DNA of 35,220 bases from Trichosphaerium sp. ATCC 40318 (taxonomy: Eukaryota; Protista; Tubulinea): the NCBI GenBank assembly GCA_038496445.1, contig JALMLS010000087.1:1-35220 (forward strand), in the 5' to 3' direction. Every line of letters starts with the position of its first letter. Position 1 is the stretch's first letter. Of the stretch, positions 531 through 33,871 are shown one piece after another. Below the pieces are notes generated by a model. The model did no database searches and was not told the DNA's origin. It was given only the letters and a program-made list of their open reading frames with translations. Position numbers and translations under genes: made by a program.

Positions 531-2053
531 TATTAACGGAGACAGGTGATTGAGTTTGTATTGACAAAGTTAGAAAAGTGAAAGTGTCAACATTTTTCTT
601 TATCAGACTACGGATTTTTATAGCCGGCTTAACCTCTAATCACGTGCCAACAGCTTCCTTGATGTTGTTGTTGCCAAGACAAGATTCATGCTGAAGAGCA
701 TTCTTTTACCTTTTACGTCCAATGGTACTGCCAAAGTAAGTCTCAGAGGTGTTTTAGTCCTTAAACTGTTTGTTTTTTGAGTGCTTCTTTCTTAGGTCGA
801 CATGGCCATCTAACAAATAATGGGCCGCATCCATTTCCGAGTCAGACAGAGTTATTCGGACAAGGACAATTATTGCTTGGAGATGTTACATTCGTAGAAG
901 AAACCATGGAGTTGAAATACAATATTTACCAATTGCTAAACGGTCTCTTGGCTACTTCAGATTATGTCGTTGCTAGAATCGTTATTGAAGATGGTGAGAT
1001 CAAGTACAAACATGCTGATATTTACTTTGATTTCTTGTAAAGGAATAAAACACTTCCCGATATTCCCAGTTCTTTGTTCAAATACACTAAATTGTTTTGA
1101 AGACTTTTTGGATATCAAAACAAAATAATCAATTCTATAGCTGTAGTTTACATGAGTTTTATTGAGTAAGACACCAAAAGTAGCTTGTAATGTTTCTTTG
1201 GTTGTTGTATCTAAAAACAACTTAAACGCCTTATGCATAGCGGCTTAATTAACTTTCATTACTACAAACAAGTCAGGATTGTTATCATAATATCAAAGGA
1301 AGCTTCTTAAATGGTACCTAAAGTCGCTAATAGTATTGCTATCTCTTAAACTTTTTCCAACACTATCCATGTATTCACCAACACGTGTTTTATGTAAAAA
1401 TATAGAGTTGATAGTAATAGCTGCAAACAAAGTCAGAAAACAGTCACAAACTAAAAACATGTGATAATTTCACGTACCTGAACCAACCAACAGAAACATG
1501 GAAACAAGTACAAACCGTGTGAACCTGTTAATATTGTCTGTTTCATTCAAGTTTTGAGATAGACTGACTTTGAGCAAAAAAATCCAGTTTCTGCCCACTT
1601 GTGCTTAGGAACGTTAGATCCCTATCGTCCATTGGCTCCTACAAACAACACTACACAGATTGGAGAACCTATCTCTTGGCTTGACCGCTTGGTCACGAGG
1701 CCTGAGATCCTTGTTTTATTCAAAGACCTAGACACACAATAAAACTACAATCGAAAACCAAAAACTGTCCGAGTACATCATAGTCATTGCGTATTGCCTC
1801 TAGCCGTTGCTTACTCCTCTAGATTGTTGACTTGTACTTTAAGTCGCCAACCTCCCTTAGTGTCAAACGTCCGCAAAACCAGGTTTGTACAGCCATTACT
1901 TTTCACGTCATTCCTATCCTTTGGATTGCTTCACCTTAAAATGCAGTACTTTTATTAGTGACAAATCGTGTACAGTATCCTTCAGTTTAGAACAATGAAA
2001 TTGAACTGAACGGGAAGGAACTTGTTATTATTAATTACTAAATAACCTCAATG

Positions 2054-3212
2054 TTAACGATGTAGCAGTGCTATTCGTTCTTCATTTAATGACGCCACTG
2101 CCTTTGCTGACCGTTTACTAAACACAAGTTAAGTGAGTATTCTTTTTTTTCTTTCAATTCACCTTGATACACACGGAGCTATAAAACCTGGGTGGAATGT
2201 TGGAAGAGTGATGCTTGATTGAACTGTTCTATATGGTGTTTGAGTGCCTACAATTCTTGTAAGCCAAATATAATAAACAATAAATGATTGAAGAGAACAT
2301 AAGTGCCTGTTGTTTTATCAATTGCTATTGACATTCGTGGGGTTTCAGCAAAACTGTTGATACCAACATTTGTAGTATCATCAAGCCTTAACAGCAAGAT
2401 AGTACCCACAATTGGAGAACCCAAAGTATTAATCGAATCAATAACGCATGCTCCTGGAACAAAAAAAGCTGATGTATCAACAGAATGAATTTCAGAACTC
2501 CCAAATCTTTGAGCAACAGACAACATTGTTGTTTCGCTATCAACTACCACTGTAACAGAAACAGTAAGTCATATTAAGCAAGAAAAAAAGAAGAAAAAAT
2601 TGATGGTTATCAACGTACTTCCAATAAAACCAGAAGGTCTTACTGGTGATATTACGCACGAGTATATTGGAGATACACAATTATTCGTATTTGTTATGTC
2701 AAGTTTGTATGTTGCCACTGTGGATGACGGAGGAAGTAAAACAATGAATGTTGTATCATCAATAAATTGACCGGCAATAGCAAACTCTGGGAAGTCGCCA
2801 GTACATATTAATGTGTTGTCAATTGATTTAACTATTACTTTAAATCTTCCACTAGTTTCTATCATTGTCAAAAGAATCATCGAGCCATCAAATGAAGGTA
2901 CTAAAAAAGCATCATCAGCCTGTAAAACAGCATACTTGGTTTTACATCTGTGGCTCACTTATGGCTGGAAATTGTTCTGATTGAAGCGTAAACGTAGCAG
3001 TGACGCCCAGAGAAGTAGGTTCTGCAAATAGTTAAGTACGAAACAAGGGTAAATATTTTACCATTATTAAACTCTAAGTCTGTATAAAATACTTCAACAT
3101 TTTCAGGATCAGTTAGTGATGAAGCCACACCATAAATATACCCAGGAGAGATTTGGCGACAAGAAATAGATATAATTAAGGCCAATAACGCCAGTATGGA
3201 TGTAAAATGCAT
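2054..3212 (-). CDS. Secreted protein of unknown function (multi-exon; intact paralogue of 17984-19157)
   Basis: Signal-peptide-like start MHFTSILALLALIISISC. ORF-track pieces 2955-3212, 2569-2958 and 2248-2550 join through short GT-AG introns. The last exon reads KRSAKAVASLNEERIALLHR*. Exons and introns align with the copy at 17984-19157. Confidence 0.8.
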
Positions 3213-4021
3213 GTGATCTCAAGAGACGTTGTGATGTTTAGTGTACCAATAGTTTTTGGCTTAAGTGATAAAAGGCACTTGATATCACGGAAGCAGATCA
3301 TCATGAACAAACATTATGGCATTATATTCATTGTGTCAATCCTGTCTTGGCCTTCTTTTGTAGTTTATTATGTTGATTAGTTTGTAGTAAAATACTACAA
3401 TCACGGTTATCCACGAACTCTTTTCTATCACACTTGTTCTTCTTGCTCCATTTGAAACGTAAGCAGTGCTCTTTGTAGTGCAAAAATAGTGATAACTCCG
3501 CACCTCAGTCATGTGCGGATCATTTGACGAAATGTACGCTTTTCAAAATTGGATCTTTCGAGAAACAGCTGTACCATCACGACCGCAATATATCCGTAAC
3601 ACTCTCAGTTATTTCTAACCAATTGAAGTCTGTAATTGTATTCATATCAGTCATGAGTGAATATGTGGAAAATTTCAAGCTTTTACAAAACAATTACAAG
3701 TAGTGATCATGCTTTCTTGTTTTGTTATTCAATTATCATTTGCTACACGATTCTTTTTAAGTGTATAATAAATCCCCTCGTATGGATGATAGAGCCATCA
3801 AGACTCTTCACCTCCAATATGCACCTTCTTTGTGTTGACTATGTCCAATCTAACGTATCAAGGTGACTCTACAACCTGGCACATGAGTCTGGTGGATCTT
3901 GAGGCCGAATGAATGCTTGTATCTTTAGTGCTTTAATACCACAGAACTACGTTGACAATAGCCTGAATTTCACATATTGGAAACACTCTATTTTTTGTAG
4001 AGCAACAGCCATACACTACTC

Positions 4022-6780: not shown

Positions 6781-7731
6781 TTATTTGTGTATCTCTTTGT
6801 GTTGCTTATTGGCTTCCAAGTCCGATTTTGTAGCAACTAACATTTCAATTTTTTCTTTTGAAATCTGTTTACAACCACTTAGAATAACAAGGCGTTTAAG
6901 TGATTTCAAGTGCTCAAAACATTCATTGGTGATCATATCATTAGACATAAGGTAAAGAATTTCAAGGTTGACCAAGTACTTTAATCCTAAGTCTGTAATC
7001 CCATTACACCCACAAACACCAAGCTGCTTCAGGTTGACCAAGTTCTTCAAACATGAGTCTGTTATATTCGGACACCTAATCAAGGAAAGGGTATTCACAT
7101 TTATCAACGATGAGAATCCATCATCAGTCGTCATCTTAGCTTTATCAATAAAGAGCGTGTGGACATTACATAGATACTTCAACCATGAGTCTTGAGGATT
7201 GGAGAGGATAAGTTTATGAACTTCTTTTAGTGCCTTTATTCCTTCAACAGTAATATTCTTGCAATGTCTAATATCGATTGTATGTACACCTTTGAGTGCC
7301 TTTAAAGATACATCTGTGATGGACGTTTCACTCAAGTATATTGTATGAATGGAGCAGTGACTAAAATGTTGTCCTTTGTTTACTAGTCCAACAATATCTG
7401 CATCTGTCAATATGGCACCATTTAAATAAATGGTTCGAACACCACAAAGATAATTCAAGTCGTTCCCTTCTAGTTCTAGATACTCACAAACAATTTTAGT
7501 GTTTTTGAGCAAAGGACTTTCAAAGAGAACACGACAATCTGTTGAATCATGTAATTTGATGATATTAAAGCCAAGATTGTTACGTATGATGTCTCTGAAT
7601 ACACTAGATACTCTACAAGCTCTAATACGCTGTTTCCTGTTTAAAAAACTCAAAATATGAGTAATCGTCTCTGGTGGCATACTTTGAAGACGTGTAACTC
7701 GATTCATAGCTTCTTCTTGCTTGATCGACAT
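6781..7731 (-). CDS. F-box / leucine-rich-repeat protein (intronless, 316 aa)
   Basis: N-terminal F-box LQSMPPETITHILSFLNRKQRIRACRVSSVFRDII is followed by Cys-containing LRRs (e.g. VNTLSLIRCPNITDSCLKNL, LKQLGVCGCNGITDLGLKYL). Single uninterrupted ORF. Confidence 0.9.
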   Translation of the reverse strand: MSIKQEEAMNRVTRLQSMPPETITHILSFLNRKQRIRACRVSSVFRDIIRNNLGFNIIKLHDSTDCRVLFESPLLKNTKIVCEYLELEGNDLNYLCGVRTIYLNGAILTDADIVGLVNKGQHFSHCSIHTIYLSETSITDVSLKALKGVHTIDIRHCKNITVEGIKALKEVHKLILSNPQDSWLKYLCNVHTLFIDKAKMTTDDGFSSLINVNTLSLIRCPNITDSCLKNLVNLKQLGVCGCNGITDLGLKYLVNLEILYLMSNDMITNECFEHLKSLKRLVILSGCKQISKEKIEMLVATKSDLEANKQHKEIHK

Positions 7732-10083: not shown

Positions 10084-10889
10084 TCAAAACGATATCGCTA
10101 AATACGATTTGTCACGTATAAATTGACCTTTATCATAAAAATGTACAGTTCTTAATTCACCATCTTCACTCCAAAATATATCTTCGCCCTGTTTTTGTGG
10201 AAAGACTTGTTGTTGTGTACTTACATAAAAGCATTGACGCTTTATTTGACCATTCTTATACCAACTTTTTTCTTCACCTTGCTGTTTGTTATCAACATAA
10301 AAACACTTGTAAGCCATTTGGCCATTATCATGCCAAGCTATTTTATCACCTTCTAGCTTCTGAATTGCTGTACAATTACTAATCGGAGCCTTGCTATAAC
10401 AAATACTACTTCTTTTGATGCCATTCATGTACCAACTTTTCTCTTCTCCAACTTTTATGTTGTTCGAGTACAAACACGTGGATTCCATCCTACCATTCCT
10501 ATACCAACGCTTCTCTTGTCCGTGTCTCTTACTATTGATGTAAAAACATTCCATTTTAACCAGACTTTTATGCTCAGCATTCCACAAGTTGCCTTCTCCT
10601 TCAATTAGGAAACATTGAATGCGCATTGGACAATTAAAATATTTCCTCCATTTACCATGCTTATCAAACGTGCTATTGAATCTTGTAGTTATAGCCATGT
10701 GGTTGGATAAAAGAGGAGCCATTTTATGAATACTTCTCCGTCTAAATCGATAATATCTAGGTGCAACTCAACGGGGAGGGTTAATAGGCAGTAATCAGCC
10801 AACTCTGAGGTATTAATCTACGAGGATGTCGCCGGTTAGTTTATGCTACATAGTACGTTTTAGCCAGCTACCTTTCGTTTTGACGCCAT
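10084..10889 (-). CDS. MORN-variant repeat protein with F-box-like N-terminus (one intron, one apparent frameshift)
   Basis: ORF 10084-10722 has MORN-variant repeats (KRHGQEKRWYRNGRMESTCLYSNNIKVGEEKSWYMNG...). Upstream exon 10889-10872 (MASKRK) and intron 10871-10818 (ACTAAC branch point) lead into LLTLPVELHLDIIDLDGEVFIKWLLFYP, which is one frame off the MORN ORF. Confidence 0.75.
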
Positions 10890-13990: not shown

Positions 13991-14327
13991 TGCAAATATT
14001 ACGCCATGACGTTTTGTGCGGCGAATCTGCTTCGTGAAATCAAGTGCGTTTGGTTCACTTAAGGGCCTTCTAAGTTTTTACTTTGTTTGACCATTGGCAG
14101 CGAGTGTAATGATACATACTTAGTGATGTATTTTTGTCTGTTTACCCCTTTACCTAGCCTAGTAAACTGTGATCTGGTATCACAGTTTACGTCAATTGAG
14201 GGTTCAATTACATGGGGTACTCTATAAACTTTGCCCATACACCCCTTAACTTTTTTTTTTACAGTCTTTGGTTTTTTTATATTGAGCCCTCTAACTATTT
14301 ATGTTCTCTTGGATTCATATTGACTAT

Positions 14328-14580: not shown

Positions 14581-14961
14581 AGAAATTGTTTTTTTTTTAT
14601 CCTTTCCTAGTCCACAGTTTTATGATTAAAACGTTATTTTGGGCTCTAGCACGCACAACAAACGCTATTTAAGGGTGTACTGCCTCAAAACAAAAAAAAA
14701 AAGCCTTAAACTGGTTTTTTGTAATTTAAAGCTTAGTTTTAACGTTAAAAGCATAATTCAGCGTTGTATAGGCGCTTCTGAAGCTTTTGGAAGCCTTTCA
14801 ATGAAAAAAGCTATCAACAGCCTATAAAATTGTTTTAATACCACACAAGCCCTTTTTTACGCGCAAAAATACCACTGCAATGTTATATAGCCTTAACAGT
14901 TATTTTTTTTTGTCGGAATTTTTGTGATCATTGACAACTCATTATTGTAGGTTAAAAACTC

Positions 14962-17757
14962 ATGACAAGCTCCAATAGAACATCTCAAAACTGTTTTTTA
15001 TGCACTTTTGATATAACATGCAATGTAACAGAGGCAAAAAACAAAAAAAAATATCGACGAATTGATAAAGAATTAGTACATGCTAGTTGTTATTATGAAT
15101 ACTACAAACAGCTCAAAAGTAAACATTGTATACTTAAATTCTTCCTCACTCTTTTTTTAGAGCCCAAGAATCCAATCATTCTTGATGAAGAAAATGTTGA
15201 TCAATACATGGGGATGGATTTGACAGCCGTTGAACTTACAATAGAAACTCCTTTCAATTTGTCTTTATTACCTCAACCTGCACTTGTCGATGAATGCCAT
15301 GCTGATATGGTTGATGTTACCAATGAAAGCAGTCCAAGAAACATAGAATGTGGATCATCGTCCATTGATGAGCCTACCACAAATCTTTCGTTCAAACCAA
15401 CCTTTACTCCATTGGCACGTGCACCAACATCAAAGCCTTTCTCTGATGACCAGATGGTTTCTGTTCCTGTGAAATTGTTGGAGACTCTGGCTAAAGGAGT
15501 GAGCTGTTGCCCTTCATGCAAAGATCCAGAAGTGGTATTCAGTAAAATACATTGTGAAGCTGAATACACATCCGTCATTTATAATTGTTGGAATTGCAAA
15601 ACACCTTTTTCTATTTCCAACTCTAAACCAAAACCATTTCATGCTAACAAAGATGTTCCTGGACGTGGAATAAAGAGTATTAACTTACATACAGTGGCAA
15701 GTGTGTTGTTGTCTGGTATTGGATTCCGAGAATATAATACATTTGCTGCATACACTGGCAAACAAGTATGTCATGCGTTTTTTATTGTAGCTATTTTACC
15801 TCAACATGTAAACTTCCATGTCGGCATAGCAAATTGTTTACGTATTTATTTTTAGGCTATTTCAAGTGCATCTTTCTATACTATCCTGCCACATGTTGCT
15901 GAAGCAGTTAAAGTTGTTGCAAAACGATCGATGAAAGCAGAATGTGATAAAGTGTATTCACAATATGCCAAAACAAACACTAAAGGCCAACATTTAGTGC
16001 TTGGTGGTGATGGTGCATGGATGTCTAGAGGATGGCATTCACGTAGTCATGTTTACACTGTATTTGATTTAATTACAAAGAAAATTCTAGCTTTAGAAGT
16101 TGTGGAAAAGTCAGCAAGCATACAAAAAGGGGATTCTGTTTTGTTATACAAAAAAGGCAATTATTGTGAAGATGAAAGTTCAAAAGGCATGGAGGGAGTC
16201 GGTTTGCAAAGAGTATTGAAGACTCTTGCTCCTCTTTTAAAATATACTTCTATGTTTATCACAGATGGAGATGCTAGTGTTCCTGTAATAGTTAAAGGAA
16301 ATGCTCAAGTGTCGAAATTAGTAGCTGCTAAACGACTAGCTTTTAATTTGGATTTTGGCCACTTTCGAAAAAAACTAGTTAAAGATGCAAAGAACATTCT
16401 TGGTGACAAAAAACGTTATAAAGGGTTTGCAAAACACATCGTTAATTGGATTGTGTATGCTATAGTAGAAGGCAAAAAAAGGAATTGGACAGAAGAAAAG
16501 GTACTAGTTATGTTGTTATATTACTAACAAATACTAGATGCAATCACATTTTTTGTTGTGTATGGACCATTTAGTTTCTCATTATACAACCATGAGTTGC
16601 GTGTCCACTTGTCCGTGTAGAAATACAACAACATTGGACATGTTAGCTTCAAAACGCAGCAACAATAGATCAACATTGGAATTGTTGCCTACTGAGCTGC
16701 TTATAGAAATAGCATTGATGATGCCAAAAAAAAAGCTGTTCTGCTTTTGTAATGACTTCAATACGACTGTTTTCTCTTACTCGTCAATGTAAAACATTAC
16801 GAGCAACCCATTACAAGAAACACAAACCTGAATTACAATGGTGCGTTTTCAATACACAACACAGATAATAACACATATAGTCTTGACCTCAATAACAAAG
16901 AAGATGTTATTATCATTGAGGGGATTAAAAGAAATTCCAATAGTAATAATGAACGTGTTATTGACATTGAAGAGGACATTGATATTGATGATGAAGAAGA
17001 GGAATTTTTTAACAACAAACCAAGTATTGGCCGAATCCCTGTTAAAGACATTGGATTACGAGGATGGGCTGAAGTATTAAAAAGGTATGTGTACAGAATA
17101 TGCCATAAATGGACTACCAGTTTGGTTGAATCATGCAACAATGAGCGGTGCGTTTACACTGATAAACGAATATTCTATAAAATCACTTTTGAAATGCGAA
17201 CTTTAATTGCAGCTGGAGTCCACAATCTTGGCCGCCTACAATTTGCTATAGAAGTTTTTGCACTATTACAAATACCCATGTCTGAAGCAACTACAACATT
17301 TCTAGAAACATTAACTGAAAAGGCTGCAAACCTGTCCCAAAAAAGACAATCACCTGAACATAAAAAACAAAAAAAAATAAGAAGAGCCAACAAGAAATCA
17401 AAAGTATATCGCAAACATAAAAACACAAGCTACAAAGATCTTCCTTCAGAAACAACCACATTGACAGGTTTAAAAAGAAAAGGTGCAACAGCAACAACAA
17501 AAGCACAAAAAAAACAACGTCTCAATGCTGAAGACGATCCACTACTATACATTTGGCAATGTCCAAAAAAAACCCACATGAGTCCAATTCTATGGAAAAA
17601 ATCGATGCATAAACAAGGATTAGAGCTTATTTGTGACTACTACCCTGATAAAAAAGACTTTGACATCTGGGCTGATGAGGTACAGGAGGTTTACCGCAAA
17701 CAAGTAACTCGTGATGATTGGCGTAAGATTAAGGAAAAAAACCAAAAGAAAAAATAA
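14962..17757 (+). CDS. DDE transposase (~861 aa after splicing and one 1-nt correction) with Zn-binding motifs and an internal F-box-like domain
   Basis: Exons are 14962-15118, 15161-15765, 15856-16500, 16538-16840 and 16881-17757, all with GT-AG introns. Catalytic motifs: GGDGAWMSRGWHS (D at 16009), ITDGDAS (D at 16264), DFGH and TSLVESCNN (E at 17128). Cys/His clusters are CFLC..HASC and CPSC..CWNC, and there is a Lys-rich NLS-like tail. The model needs one A removed from the A9 run at 16726-16734. Confidence 0.85.
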
Positions 17758-17983
17758 ATTTGATTTTTTTATTGTGGCTTGTACATAATTAATAGCGCTA
17801 TTATTTGGTACAGCGCATGCCACACAACAGTACTTTCGGCTCTCAAAAAATCAGTCCAAAAAACTAATTTCTATGAATCCAGGAGAACGCCCTTAAGCAA
17901 ACAATTGTTTTGAAGGCCAATCACATCACAAATATCTCTTGTTACATCGCAGCGTCTCTTATTACATAAATACCTTTGATCAC

Positions 17984-19157
17984 ATGCATTTTATGTCCAT
18001 ATTTGTGTTATTGGCCTTAATTATATCTATTTCTTGTCGCCAAATACCTCCTGGATATGTTTATGGTGTGGCTTCATCACTAACTGGCCCTGAAAATGTT
18101 GAAGTATTTTATACAGACTTAGAGTTTAATAATGGTAAAATACCTTTACACCTTTGTTTCGTACTTAACTATTTGCAGAACCTACTTCTCTTGGTGTCAC
18201 TGCTACGTTTGCGCTTTGAATAGAACAATTTCCAATCATAAGTAAGCCAAAGTTGTAAAACCAATTATGCTGTTTTTACAGGCTGATGATACTTTTTTAG
18301 TACCTTCATTTGATGGCTCGATGATTCTCTTGACAATGATAGAAGCCAGTACATTTAAAGTAATAGTTAAATCAATTGACAACACATTAATATGTACTGG
18401 CGAATTCCCAGAGCTTGTTGCTGCCGGTCAATTTATTGATGATACAACATTCATTGTTTGGCTTAGCTCGACATTCACAGTGGCAACATATAAACTTGAC
18501 ATAACAAATACGGATAACTGTGTATCTTCAATATACTCATGCGGAACACCAATAAGACCTCCTGGATTTGTTGGAAGTACGTTGGCTAACAACAATTTGT
18601 TCTTTTTTCTTCTTTTTTTCTCGCTTGATATGACTTACTTTTTCGGTTACAGTGGTAGTTGATAGCGAAACAACAATGGTGGCTGTTTTTCAAAGCTCTG
18701 GGGACACTGTGCTTTATACTATTGATACACCAGCTTTTTTTGTTCCAGGAGCATGTGTTATTGACATGGCATCTGTCAGTACTTTAGGTACTGTTGGGGG
18801 TATTTTCTTGTTAACAAGGCTTGATGATACTAGAAATATTGGTATCGACGTTAATACCGCCACCCCACGAGTGTCAATAGCAATTGATAAAACAACAGGT
18901 ACTTATGTTCTCTTCAATCATTTATTGGTTATTATATTTGGCTTACAAGAATTGTAGGCACTCAAACACCATATAGAACAATTCAATCACCAAGCATCAC
19001 TATTCCAACACTCTACCCAGGTTTAATAGCTCCGTGTGTATCAAGGTGACTTTAAAAAGATTCATCTTCGATACTCATTTAACTTGTGTTTAGTAAACGG
19101 TCAGCAAAGGCAGTGGCGTCATTAAATGAAGAACGAATAGCACTGCTACATCGTTAA
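17984..19157 (+). pseudogene. Inverted paralogue of the 2054-3212 secreted protein with a premature stop
   Basis: Same exon/intron structure (introns 18135-18178, 18242-18300, etc.). In exon 2, TGA at 18217-18219 aligns with CAA (Gln) of the other copy. Confidence 0.75.
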
Positions 19158-19653
19158 GTACTAGGGTTATTTAATAAACTTATACTTGAAGTGCTTTTTA
19201 AACTGTGTCATGAATTTATCTAAATACGCTGTACTATAGCGTAATAGTCACTGGCCTTGTACGCTTACAATGGTAAGTAAAGAGTCTAGTGTGATGCTAT
19301 TATTGATCAGGTCACCATATCCAGTATTACTAGACAACTACAATTAGTGGTAAACATTGTTGAGGCCGATTTTATTTGCTTAGAAAATTCCCCATTCCGC
19401 TTTAAGTCATACAATGTTGCTGCCTTCGAATATCTAGTTTGTACAACCGAAATTAATGACTAACAGGGCAACCTGGACCCACTCCAATGGTCAACTTGGA
19501 GCAGCTTTTTAATTTTACAAGCTCGGCAGATTTTGAAAGGTATAGAAGGCTTACGTAAAACACATTTTGACTGTTCTATAAAAGATACTGCACTTGGAAT
19601 TGGCAATTGCACTTGACCAAAGCCACATGTACATTTTATTTAGCTAAAAAACC

Positions 19654-26230: not shown

Positions 26231-29200
26231 TTAAGACTTTGGCACGTTAACGGTAAATGGAGATCCATTTATGTGCCCCTTTTCACGTGACATCTTCTTA
26301 CGTGCAACAACAGATACTTTATAAGCACCTTCCACCTTAGGTTTCCAAGTAACCTCAAACTTTCCTTCACCTTTAAAAAAAAAAAGTCAAAAAAAAGTTC
26401 AAACAAAATCGCTGGTCGCTGCTCGTACCCTTGTCGTCTATACTCTTACGAGCATATCTTGGTCCTTTAATCTCAACATCGAGCTTATACTCTGATACTT
26501 TAAAAGGGTTACCAAGTTGGTCATTGATTTGAATGATAAAGACATTCTGCTCTTGGACTTTAACCTTGTCTTCGTCCTAGAAAAAAAAAGTTAATTTCAA
26601 TCGTTACTGTTACACCTTTGAAGTACTCACCAAACCATCACCAGAAAGTGTTGACTCCTCAAAAGATACATCGAGTACATCATCACTTGCATCTTTATCC
26701 CTAGGTGTTTTTTTATCCTGTCTAGGTGTCTTATCCTTCTTTAAAGCTTTAGCTTCTTTTTTCTTCTTTTTAGCTTCCGCAGCTTCTTCTTTTTTTTTTG
26801 CTTTTGCTGCAATCTTTGCAGCTTCTTTACTCTGTTTAAGAGCTCTTGCTGATTCCTTCTTTTCTTTGGCATACTCTTTCTTATCTCTAGCAGAGTCTGA
26901 AGACTTAATACTAGACCTAGAACTCTTGCTCGTTAACGTCTTCTCATCTTTTACTGCTTTTACTGGAAGCGGCGAGACTTTAGTCTCAGCAACCTGTTGA
27001 GCCTTTACTGGTCCAGCGGGCTTTGGTATCGGCTTGTTAGACGCTTGAGGAGGTGCTGGTACACCAGCAGGCCTCTTAACATTAAATCGAACGACATCGC
27101 TGCCTGTTTGAAAAAAGTTTTCGTTAGTGCTTATTTCTAAGTATTTTATGCGCTTCTTTCGTACCTCTTACTTCAAAGGCTATTGGCCAAAAAACAGGTG
27201 CACCTTGATGAGTGATAGAAAGAAAGAATAACCCATTGGAAATAGGTTTAGTATATTCTATATCAAAAGTGCCGTCCTCTACGCATTATTAGAAAAACGA
27301 CCGAAAAAGCAACTATGATGGTATCGTGCCATTATCAAAAATGTCGGTTGAGATTTCTTGTGGTCCACGGATACGAACTTTAATGCTAGACTCTTTCAAA
27401 GGTACAGATTTACCTATAAAGGAGTGTGAATAAATCGAGGAGCTATTAAGAATAAAGGAAACTAACCTGATGCATCCTTAGCATCTATTGTAAATACTTG
27501 TAGAGATCCAGCAACAAATGGTTTTCCCCACATACCATCACCAGAGATGGTTTCATTAGTAGCAATAGATAAAGGTTTTTGCACAGCTCTCTTAACAGGT
27601 GCAGAAGCAGCAGGCCGTCTCTAATCAAAGCAAAAACATTAGCAAAAAATAAAAAAGGAAGGCAGAATAAGCACGTACGCCTCCGGCTTTTTTTCTAGAT
27701 ACACTCCCTGCACGCTGTACAAACTTCTTCCTTGCAGGAGGCCGAACAGCTTGCTTCTTCTTAGAAGGACTTGGTACTCTCCTTGCTGGTTCTGGTGTAT
27801 AGACACGAGGTGTTGTAGATTGCGAACGTGTTGGTTTAGTCTCAGTCTTTGGTGGACCTCTTGGAGTTGTTTCTATGATTTTTGGTGGTTCTGATGCTTG
27901 TATAGGCTCAATTTTTGGAACCTCAACCTCCATCTCTTCATCACGGACACCTTCCTTGAAAATACCGCTCCACAGAATAGATCCATCATAATAGAACAAT
28001 GCACCCTTTCCATGACGTTTACCTTGAAAAAAAAACTTATAAGTTTCCTCCTGAAACTTCTACTACGGAAACAGCGATTTCAACAAGTTTGTGTGTTGGT
28101 TACGTACCTGCATTGAGTTCACCTACATACCAACGCTTGGTATTTTGGTAGTATTCTACACCTTCACCATCCCAGTGACCTTCTTTCCAATCACCTTCGT
28201 ACCACTTATTCTTACCACCAACAAAGTACGCAACACCCTTGCCATGGCGTTTATTATTTGCGTAAGTACCGCTGTATTTTGTGGTACCATCCATGAAGTA
28301 CTCATTACCCTTTGAAACAATCGTTAGATAAGCGTATTGCAGTGCAAACACTGAAACTTTCAAAGAGCATGTGAGAAACAAAAAAAAAGTCGAAGCTGCT
28401 AATTACCTTGCCATGCCACTGACTATCCTTAAAATCACCATGGTATATTTTCGTGTATCCATCCTTTTGATAGCTAGCACCTGCACCTTCGAATTTTCCT
28501 TTCTAAGCAAAGAGTAAGAAGGCATTGCTTCCGTCCTAAATAACTTACCACAAATGCTCCAGCAAACCTCTTCTTAGCTCCAGAATCTTGATAGAATATC
28601 ACACCATTACCGTGGAACATTCCTTCAATAAAATCCCCCTAAGGAAGTTACCTGTTAGACATCACGTGATTTTTATTGTATCAAAAAAATTCTAAATTGA
28701 TCACACGTACTTCATACCACTTACTACGATCTTGAAAATACATAACACCTTGACCATGTTTCAACCCGTTTTTAAATAGTCCCTACAAATCATGTTTTAG
28801 CACAAGTGATTCTCTAGTAATTGCGAGCCATCACGTGGTAAAAAAAACCTAATTTTATCCGTTTCGTAATAAAACAAGTCTGTCAATCTGGCTCGATGAC
28901 AAACAAGCCAAATACAAGATGGTAAAAATTAAATAGGTAACATCTACATACCTTGTAAAACGGTACGCCATCTTTGTAATACTCAACACCTTCGCCGTCC
29001 CACTTACCATCTTTCCACTCTCCAATATATTTCTTCTTTCCAACTTTCTCAGAGTAGTACAATATCCCTGTACCAGTCCAATTGGCATTCTCATCGAATG
29101 AACCTAATCACAGTTACTATATTATCCATGCTGAACAAAAGACGAAACCAAAAGAGGTTGGGTAGTGGCAATACCTTCAACACCTTGGAAATCTCGATTT

Positions 29201-32839: not shown

Positions 32840-33871
32840 CAAGTCTGGTGTAATATATCAGTTTTTGGTATATACCACTTTTATACCACTTTTTTATACC
32901 AGTTTTTTATGGTATATACAAAAAAAAGTGGTATATTTTGAAAAAATACCAAAAAAAGTGGTATATTGACCCAAATATACCAACAATATACCAAAAAAAC
33001 AGGTATAAAAACAGAAAATATACCACTTTTTGTAGAAAAAAAAATATACCCTTTTTATACCACTTTTTTAGGTATATACCACTTACCACTTTTTTTATAC
33101 CAGTTTTTCATGGTATACCACTCTTATATACCACTTTATGCTTACTTATAGTACACCTGCAATTCAAAAATACACTTTATTTAATACACAGTTTGTGAGT
33201 TACAAGTTTTGGACAATGTCCACTACAGTTACATTACTATGGGCGTCTGGAAAATTCGTCCATCCCCATGAGCTTGCTGTACCTACTGTAAAAACATGCT
33301 GTGCACCTAATGAAAGTGGTTCCACCTGAATCTATCAATTACTAAGGCCTACGGAGGTCGGTTAATGTATATCAAACGAAAATAAAATAAAACTTTGTCT
33401 GGTACCCACGAACGTCTGTATAATACCTGCAATATAGTTTCCTCAATGTTGGTACTGGAATAAGGTCCTGCGGTCCGAATGAGCTTGGTTTGGTTAGATT
33501 CTATGATATACTAAGGTCCCTACGCACCGTTCAATGTATGACGTCCATGATCGTTCAACAAGAAAACCCATTACCAAAAAGCTCCTTAATGACCTTCTTG
33601 AAGCATACCATAAAGTGGTATATACCAATAAAAAATTGGTATATACCACATACCATAAAAAGTGGTATATACCACTTTATATACCATTTTAGAAGGTCTC
33701 ATTATGTGAATGAAAAGTGGTATATACCACTATCTACCACTTTTTTATTCACTTAATTTTTAAAAAAAGTGGTATTTCAAAATGGTATATACCAGTTCAT
33801 ATACCATTTTGTTGAAAAAGTGGTATATACCATAAAAAAACTGGTATATACCACTTTAATTTTTAGACCTG
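32840..33871. mobile_element. Non-autonomous TIR element with dense TGGTATATACCA subterminal arrays
   Basis: Termini CAAGTCT... and ...AGACCTG form an imperfect inverted repeat. Arms ~32860-33140 and ~33605-33860 are made of AAAGTGGTATA/TATACCACTTT units in both orientations around a unique ~450-bp core. No target-site duplication is visible. Confidence 0.65.

Follow-up and report, generated by a model that had tools for sequence, protein, structure and literature searches.

The window, meaning the whole stretch of 35,220 nt that was analysed, had a GC content of about 36%, short GT-AG introns and eukaryotic genes, including actin, carboxylesterase and MORN-repeat genes (the last at 10084-10722 and 27625-28381, both on the minus strand; PF07661 and PF02493). 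An intronless F-box/LRR gene of 316 aa was located at 6781-7731 on the minus strand (PF00646, E 1e-7) and was of a type found in amoebae and their giant viruses. A spliced gene without a Pfam match was present as an inverted duplication (2035-3218 on the minus strand and 17978-19177 on the plus strand) with 86% identity over 1.2 kb. Direct and inverted TGGTATATACCA-type repeats were densely clustered at 32844-33869 (31% GC), and could represent either a MITE or something resembling an origin.

A transposase gene was predicted on the plus strand at 14962-17757. It consisted of five exons separated by four predicted GT-AG introns (15119-15160, 15766-15855, 16501-16537, and 16841-16880), and the exons totalled 2587 nt, that is, 862 codons including the stop and one extra base, giving a protein of 861 aa. 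Exon 1 (14962-15118) encoded a predicted Cys/His-rich N-terminus, and the intron behind it was in frame, so that its retention is possible. Exon 2 (15161-15765) encoded a linker and a CxxC..CxxC region with a weak match to PF20700 (E 0.016); the intron following it had an equivalent in the relatives L001 and L003. Exon 3 (15856-16500) encoded the RNase H core with the first Asp (DGAW, 16009), the second Asp (DGD, 16264) and the DxxH motif (DFGH, 16351). A profile search with exon 3 retrieved 57 relatives, the best of which was 48% identical. Exon 5 (16881-17757) contained the catalytic Glu (VES, 17128), a helical region, a basic tract and the C-terminal tail, and shared 32% identity with L001 over 213 aa (E 8e-36). 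The tail had no Pfam match and showed poor conservation within the family. When exon 5 or the insert region of the relative P0010 served as the query of word-based protein searches, the query alone was recovered.

A zinc finger of the form H-x5-C-x3-C-P-C (HYTTMSC..CPC) was found at 16580-16618, past the second Asp and ahead of the catalytic Glu, and its H, C, C and C were invariant in alignment A7. Nearly all Kolobok transposases carry a zinc finger between DxxH and Glu (Kojima and Bao, PMC9587614), and the H..C...CPC cluster described in an earlier sequence-only reading of this DNA could be refined to this known feature, the first-acquired zinc finger of Kolobok. That reading had also listed the second Asp/DxxH region, the F-box-like motif, the VES Glu, an A9 run, an acidic tract and four introns, and its sequence features were all found where it had placed them. 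The acidic tract (16963-17004, plus strand) was real, within a loop of 56 aa in the window against 23 aa in L001 and L003; it was absent from both relatives and is a lineage-specific feature outside the F-box module. The predicted structure of P0010 (pLDDT 87) matched the ISCth4 and Hermes transposases (Z 11), and its nearest Atlas clusters (TM 0.61-0.66) were PF20700 proteins combined with a DEDDh or YqaJ nuclease, which are the KolobokD and KolobokE architectures.

Judged from its termini and gene, the window element is a single-gene Kolobok cut-and-paste transposon flanked by TTAA. Its right end (17864-17896, minus strand) carried a TIR/subterminal sequence that resembled the right end of L001, a complete relative, over about 29 nt, and terminated in YY-TTAA (17891-17896). 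Two candidate left ends were present on the plus strand. The first, at 14059-14071, consisted of a TTAA target-site duplication and a short TIR, GGGCCTTCT, with 8/9 matches to the right end. The second, TTAA-GGGTGTACT at 14669-14684, was 290 nt upstream of the ATG, a spacing resembling that of L001. Both read TTAA-GGG and each shared 9/16 positions with the right end, which leaves the left end ambiguous between 14059 and 14669. The TTAA-GGG at 14059 and a CCCC-TTAA at 14244-14249 may bound a 191-bp non-autonomous Kolobok-like element (14059-14249); if this is a separate element, the large element would in truth start at 14669. The TTAA duplication, judged at occupied sites, was found at the right end (17893-17896), at either candidate left end, and likewise in L001, L006 and L007. 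The termini were GG..CC, conforming to 5'-RR/YY-3', with short TIRs matching at 8/9 positions in the window, where the left end is ambiguous, and at 14/16 in L001 and L007 and 11/16 in L006. Outside the element, the plus-strand copy of the duplicated spliced gene began 80 nt beyond the right end.

Assignment to MuDR/Mutator in the strict sense was rejected. MuDR elements have variable target-site duplications of 8-11 bp and long TIRs, and the absence of a zinc finger between D and E was also used as a criterion; the window element has TTAA, short TIRs and the zinc finger. The label 'Mutator-like' of PF20700 extends to Kolobok-type proteins. No accessory nuclease, helicase or KolX gene was found in the element, which has a single gene whose fifth exon and tail lack a Pfam match, and membership in the KolobokD, E, H, P or Kol0 lineages, for which such a gene was the criterion, was rejected as well.

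An F-box-like domain was located at 16676-16790 on the plus strand (LPTELLIEI, with the LP at 16685). The motif lay 23 residues past the zinc finger, in the stretch that separates the second Asp from the catalytic Glu, and was followed by a basic helix, R-x-x-H-x-K-K (16791-16826, plus strand), common to L001, L003 and L005. One extra base in an A9 run (16726-16734, plus strand), the sole frameshift of the gene, splits the domain; either a homopolymer error in the assembly or a genuine mutation could account for it. In L001, L003 and L005, the three closest relatives and all spliced loci, the zinc finger, linker, F-box-like helices and basic helix were encoded in a single frame. A profile built from relatives only was run against 1518 six-frame segments and matched two adjacent pieces of the window, one in frame 0 over positions 3 to about 63 of the profile and one in frame +1 over positions 65-97 (E 0.004); the sole further match under E 0.5 was the F-box/LRR gene of the window. 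The conserved Pro and the conserved Arg were 94 nt apart in the window, 93 nt in L003 and 90 nt in L001. The GT-AG intron 3' of the F-box (16841-16880, plus strand), with a phase-2 donor, agreed in position and phase with that of L001 and L003. Since the three relatives read through in one frame and two of them share this intron, A8 is the ancestral reading and the F-box segment exonic, which bears out the correction from A9 to A8 proposed earlier.

The insert almost certainly derives from an F-box. In the window itself, Pfam searches of the exon pieces and of the F-box halves (19 and about 20 residues, each half alone) gave no F-box match. Among the relatives, the whole P0010 protein exceeded the Pfam cut-offs (PF12937, 26 bits; PF00646, 21 bits), as did the segment of P0017 (PF12937, 26 bits). 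Matches below threshold were obtained for P0004, L001, L005 and L023, and no Pfam F-box match for L003, P0007, P0025 and L013. In profile searches of the PDB, Skp2 was the top match both with 7 inserts (E 0.002) and with 11 relatives (E 8e-5), and in the latter search it was followed by Legionella AnkB (E 0.013), Fbw7, FBXO31, FBXO4, TIR1, Dia2 and FBH1. The insert profile also aligned to the F-box of the host gene at 6781-7731 (E 3e-5) and, at adjacent positions, to the two halves of the window's transposase domain. The central claim of the sequence-only reading, that a DDE transposase has an F-box-derived insert within its catalytic domain, is supported by the Pfam, PDB profile and structural matches of the family.

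The structural matches were weak but consistent with an F-box for a motif of 40 residues. The predicted L003 insert formed helices at 53-62, 65-74 and 76-84, with low confidence (pLDDT 65, pTM 0.36). In a structural search of 48,161 chains with this model, F-box proteins, aligned over these helices, filled 8 of the first 12 rows and 15 of the first 50, at Z scores of only 2.2-3.8. Superposition on FBH1, beta-TrCP, FBXL5 and Skp2 gave an rmsd of 2.1-2.5 over 40-44 residues (Z at most 3.8, pLDDT 65). A Foldseek search with the isolated insert returned nothing. In the ESM Atlas, F-box clusters were the sole named sets for L003 (0.94, with a low shared-feature count) and for the first half of the window domain (0.79), and these values serve as a lead only. 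Across 12 F-box members, the hallmark Pro and the Asp/Glu at position 4 were each present in 12/12, with hydrophobic residues at positions 5 and 9. P0010, P0025 and L020 had insertions of 7-25 residues between the F-box helices. In the P0010 model, pLDDT was 90 or more in the core, 56-76 in the F-box and below 50 in the linkers, and the F-box was not packed on the core. The F-boxes of the window clade are degenerate.

The loop was visible in 41 family members including the window, and 12 of them, the window again counted, had the motif at an offset of 17-25 residues from the end of the zinc finger. In the remaining 29, the linker was short or the loop was long and in many cases acidic, with a DE fraction up to 0.45. 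This agrees with the earlier view of the site as a variable loop, and the insert proved not to be limited to one decayed copy. Motif-shuffle values are circular, as the motif was derived from the same sequences; the evidence lies in the fixed offset and in the absence from the 29 other members. Complete elements bounded by TTAA and TIRs, with an F-box and all catalytic residues, were L001 (2891 bp), L006 (2874 bp) and L007 (3279 bp), and these are therefore transposons, not host genes. The Logan contig of L001 (1-2892) spans TTAA to TTAA exactly, as a multi-copy recently active element would, with the F-box region unbroken; L001 and L002 differ by one base. Assembly GCA_049309645.1 (L006, L007 and L044) contains two Kolobok elements with an F-box and one without. 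Further relatives were found in Balamuthia mandrillaris, where the protein ends upstream of the loop, and in Endostelium zonatum, where it lacks the F-box. Scans with the close-clade alignment gave no match in contigs from metagenomes or viruses. The wider alignment, scanned against viral and prokaryotic genomes, gave none either, hence nothing points to a source in viruses or bacteria.

In phylogenetic trees based on the core alone, the F-box members fell into three deep groups, and at least 4-5 changes were required. P0025, with an F-box, was sister to P0033 and P0047, without one (support 100/100). A single F-box clade was rejected by the AU test (p 1e-5). The root was set by a long outgroup, L033 448-4999, a complete Kolobok element with perfect 16-bp TIRs, a different transposase subtype and no F-box. 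We infer that one early gain followed by repeated loss best fits the fixed offset; repeated capture of the F-box is possible. In alignment A1 (relatives P0004-P0057), a Ulp1 SUMO protease occurred in 3/41 and OTU-like domains in 2/41 members. This Kolobok group seems, from these domains, to have repeatedly acquired modules of the ubiquitin/SUMO pathway.

Among the window, L001 and L003, identity was 33-50% in the F-box halves and 36-49% in the core, against 17-28% in the linker preceding the F-box and 22-30% in the loop following it. The segments are short, so the comparison is a rough measure, and synonymous sites were mostly saturated. By this rough measure the F-box insert appears to evolve like the core, unlike the linkers, and to be kept under selection.

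These data suggest a course of events in which a subgroup of single-gene Kolobok transposons would have taken up a host F-box early, into a surface loop after the zinc finger. Selection would have kept it, and several lineages would have lost it or swapped in acidic loops. Cells use F-boxes to couple proteins to their ubiquitination machinery. In the transposase, the F-box is predicted to hang from the folded core by flexible linkers and, judging from its family, would dock on host Skp1 and make the transposase its own SCF substrate receptor. Skp1 binding is likely for the F-box Kolobok family; for the degenerate window clade the balance tips just in its favour. Because the F-box is not followed by an LRR, WD40 or other substrate-binding domain, the protein closest to the E2 would be the transposase itself or a partner subunit. 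Self-ubiquitination would then keep the transposase scarce, or tag the finished strand-transfer complex for removal, which would allow repair. Auto-ubiquitination is common in F-box proteins without bound substrate, and DDE strand-transfer complexes require active disassembly, as carried out on MuA by ClpX. Since a separate substrate-binding domain is absent, self-ubiquitination for turnover or for removal of the transpososome or strand-transfer complex is the reading we favour, tentatively and at somewhat under an even chance. Against it stand the degenerate F-boxes of the window clade, the low structural Z scores and pLDDT of the insert, the rejection of one F-box clade, and the lack of the F-box in 29/41 relatives, which marks it as dispensable to the family. 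A broader proposal is that these elements form a protist Kolobok lineage, widespread and so far undescribed, in which the active transposase acts as an SCF substrate receptor and brings the host ligase to the transpososome for its dismantling or for removal of chromatin or silencing proteins; here a transposon would have captured an F-box and put it to use in transposition. This proposal seems slightly more probable than its contrary.

An F-box-derived module without an active ligase, acting as a structural or protein-contact module (a dimer contact, or packing with the R-x-x-H-x-K-K helix) or as a Skp1 tether, is a less probable alternative. The window clade is conserved even though it falls below the Pfam thresholds, the conservation continues into the basic helix, and the 7-25 residue insertions between helices in P0010, P0025 and L020 would suit such a role. 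However, the best-kept positions are the F-box hallmarks (Pro, Asp/Glu at 4, hydrophobic at 5 and 9), and the modelled domain does not pack on the core. It is unlikely that the F-box binds Skp1 and directs SCF against host proteins located close to the ends of the transposon or to its target site (nucleosomes, silencing factors or defence factors, for instance), as viral and Legionella F-box effectors do. The same F-box evidence would serve this explanation, with Legionella AnkB among the profile matches (E 0.013), and the acidic loops of many F-box-less relatives (DE up to 0.45) suggest host or chromatin contacts there. A separate substrate-binding domain was nevertheless not found, and the C-terminal tail has no Pfam match and is poorly conserved.

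Neutral cargo, in which a host genome very rich in F-boxes supplies fragments that insert into a tolerant loop and then decay, is improbable and largely refuted. The patchy distribution with at least 4-5 changes on the tree, the F-box/LRR gene within the window and the frameshift inside the F-box of the window copy would fit it, but the insert is as conserved as the core between copies with saturated synonymous sites, and its offset from the zinc finger is constant in three deep lineages. An artefact, with the segment being intronic (donor 16615 or 16789 joined to 16880; both give in-phase joins with A9 and need no frameshift) or a chance likeness of a native Kolobok helix, is highly improbable: both donors were rejected as the ancestral structure by the one-frame relatives L001, L003 and L005 and by the donor equivalent to 16841 in L001 and L003, P0004, P0007, P0010, P0017 and P0025 encode the segment within continuous ORFs, and a native LP helix of PF20700 transposases was rejected since F-box-less relatives lack the helix, their zinc finger joining the K-x-W/F-L motif directly.

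The removal of eukaryotic cut-and-paste complexes after strand transfer and the limits on transposase level are poorly understood, and an F-box transposase would offer a direct test case, with natural sister pairs with and without the F-box (P0025 versus P0033/P0047). The Kolobok core loop tolerates inserts of 50-160 residues. The family shares with the known Kolobok groups (Kol0, KolobokD, E, H and P; PMC9587614) the TTAA duplication, RR..YY ends, a DDE core with C/DxxH and the zinc finger. The accessory modules described for those groups are nucleases, a helicase or KolX, located downstream or in a second gene (PMC9587614), whereas here an F-box lies inside the catalytic domain. No F-box in Kolobok was found in the supplements of PMC9587614 or in the searchable literature. 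The sequence-only reading had known of no transposase with this architecture, which holds for Kolobok as far as these sources go, but an isoform of the platyfish Zisupton (KDZ) transposase is described as including an F-box (Bohne 2012, as cited in PMC12062965). Both are transposon-encoded proteins with an F-box; Zisupton belongs to another superfamily and concerns one fish isoform, whereas in the present family 12 divergent elements carry the F-box at one fixed site within the main reading frame.

Host F-box genes with captured transposon domains are also known, namely Caenorhabditis F-box A2 with a mariner HTH and zebrafish F-box::CxC7 (PMC12062965). They likewise join an F-box and transposon-derived sequence in one polypeptide, but as host genes with a transposon fragment, the opposite direction of capture; here the elements are bounded by TIRs and target-site duplications and have an intact DDE triad. 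A transposon taking a host F-box is the direction for which that 2025 screen reported no evidence, and one plant SWIM/Mutator protein with an F-box is among the rows listed in its table (PMC12062965). In RAG1/RAG2, a transposase-derived enzyme is likewise described as being under ubiquitin control, with RAG1 ubiquitin-ligase activity reported to promote recombination (PMC8374863) and CRL4 to direct RAG1 degradation (PMC8516306). RAG differs in using a RING ligase or a host receptor, not an F-box, in being domesticated, and in that the module is outside the core. FBH1 (F-box DNA helicase 1) and Dia2, both weak profile matches and FBH1 also a structural match, are DNA-acting proteins with a built-in F-box that directs SCF to a DNA structure; unlike the present family they are host genes, not mobile, with the F-box outside the catalytic domain.
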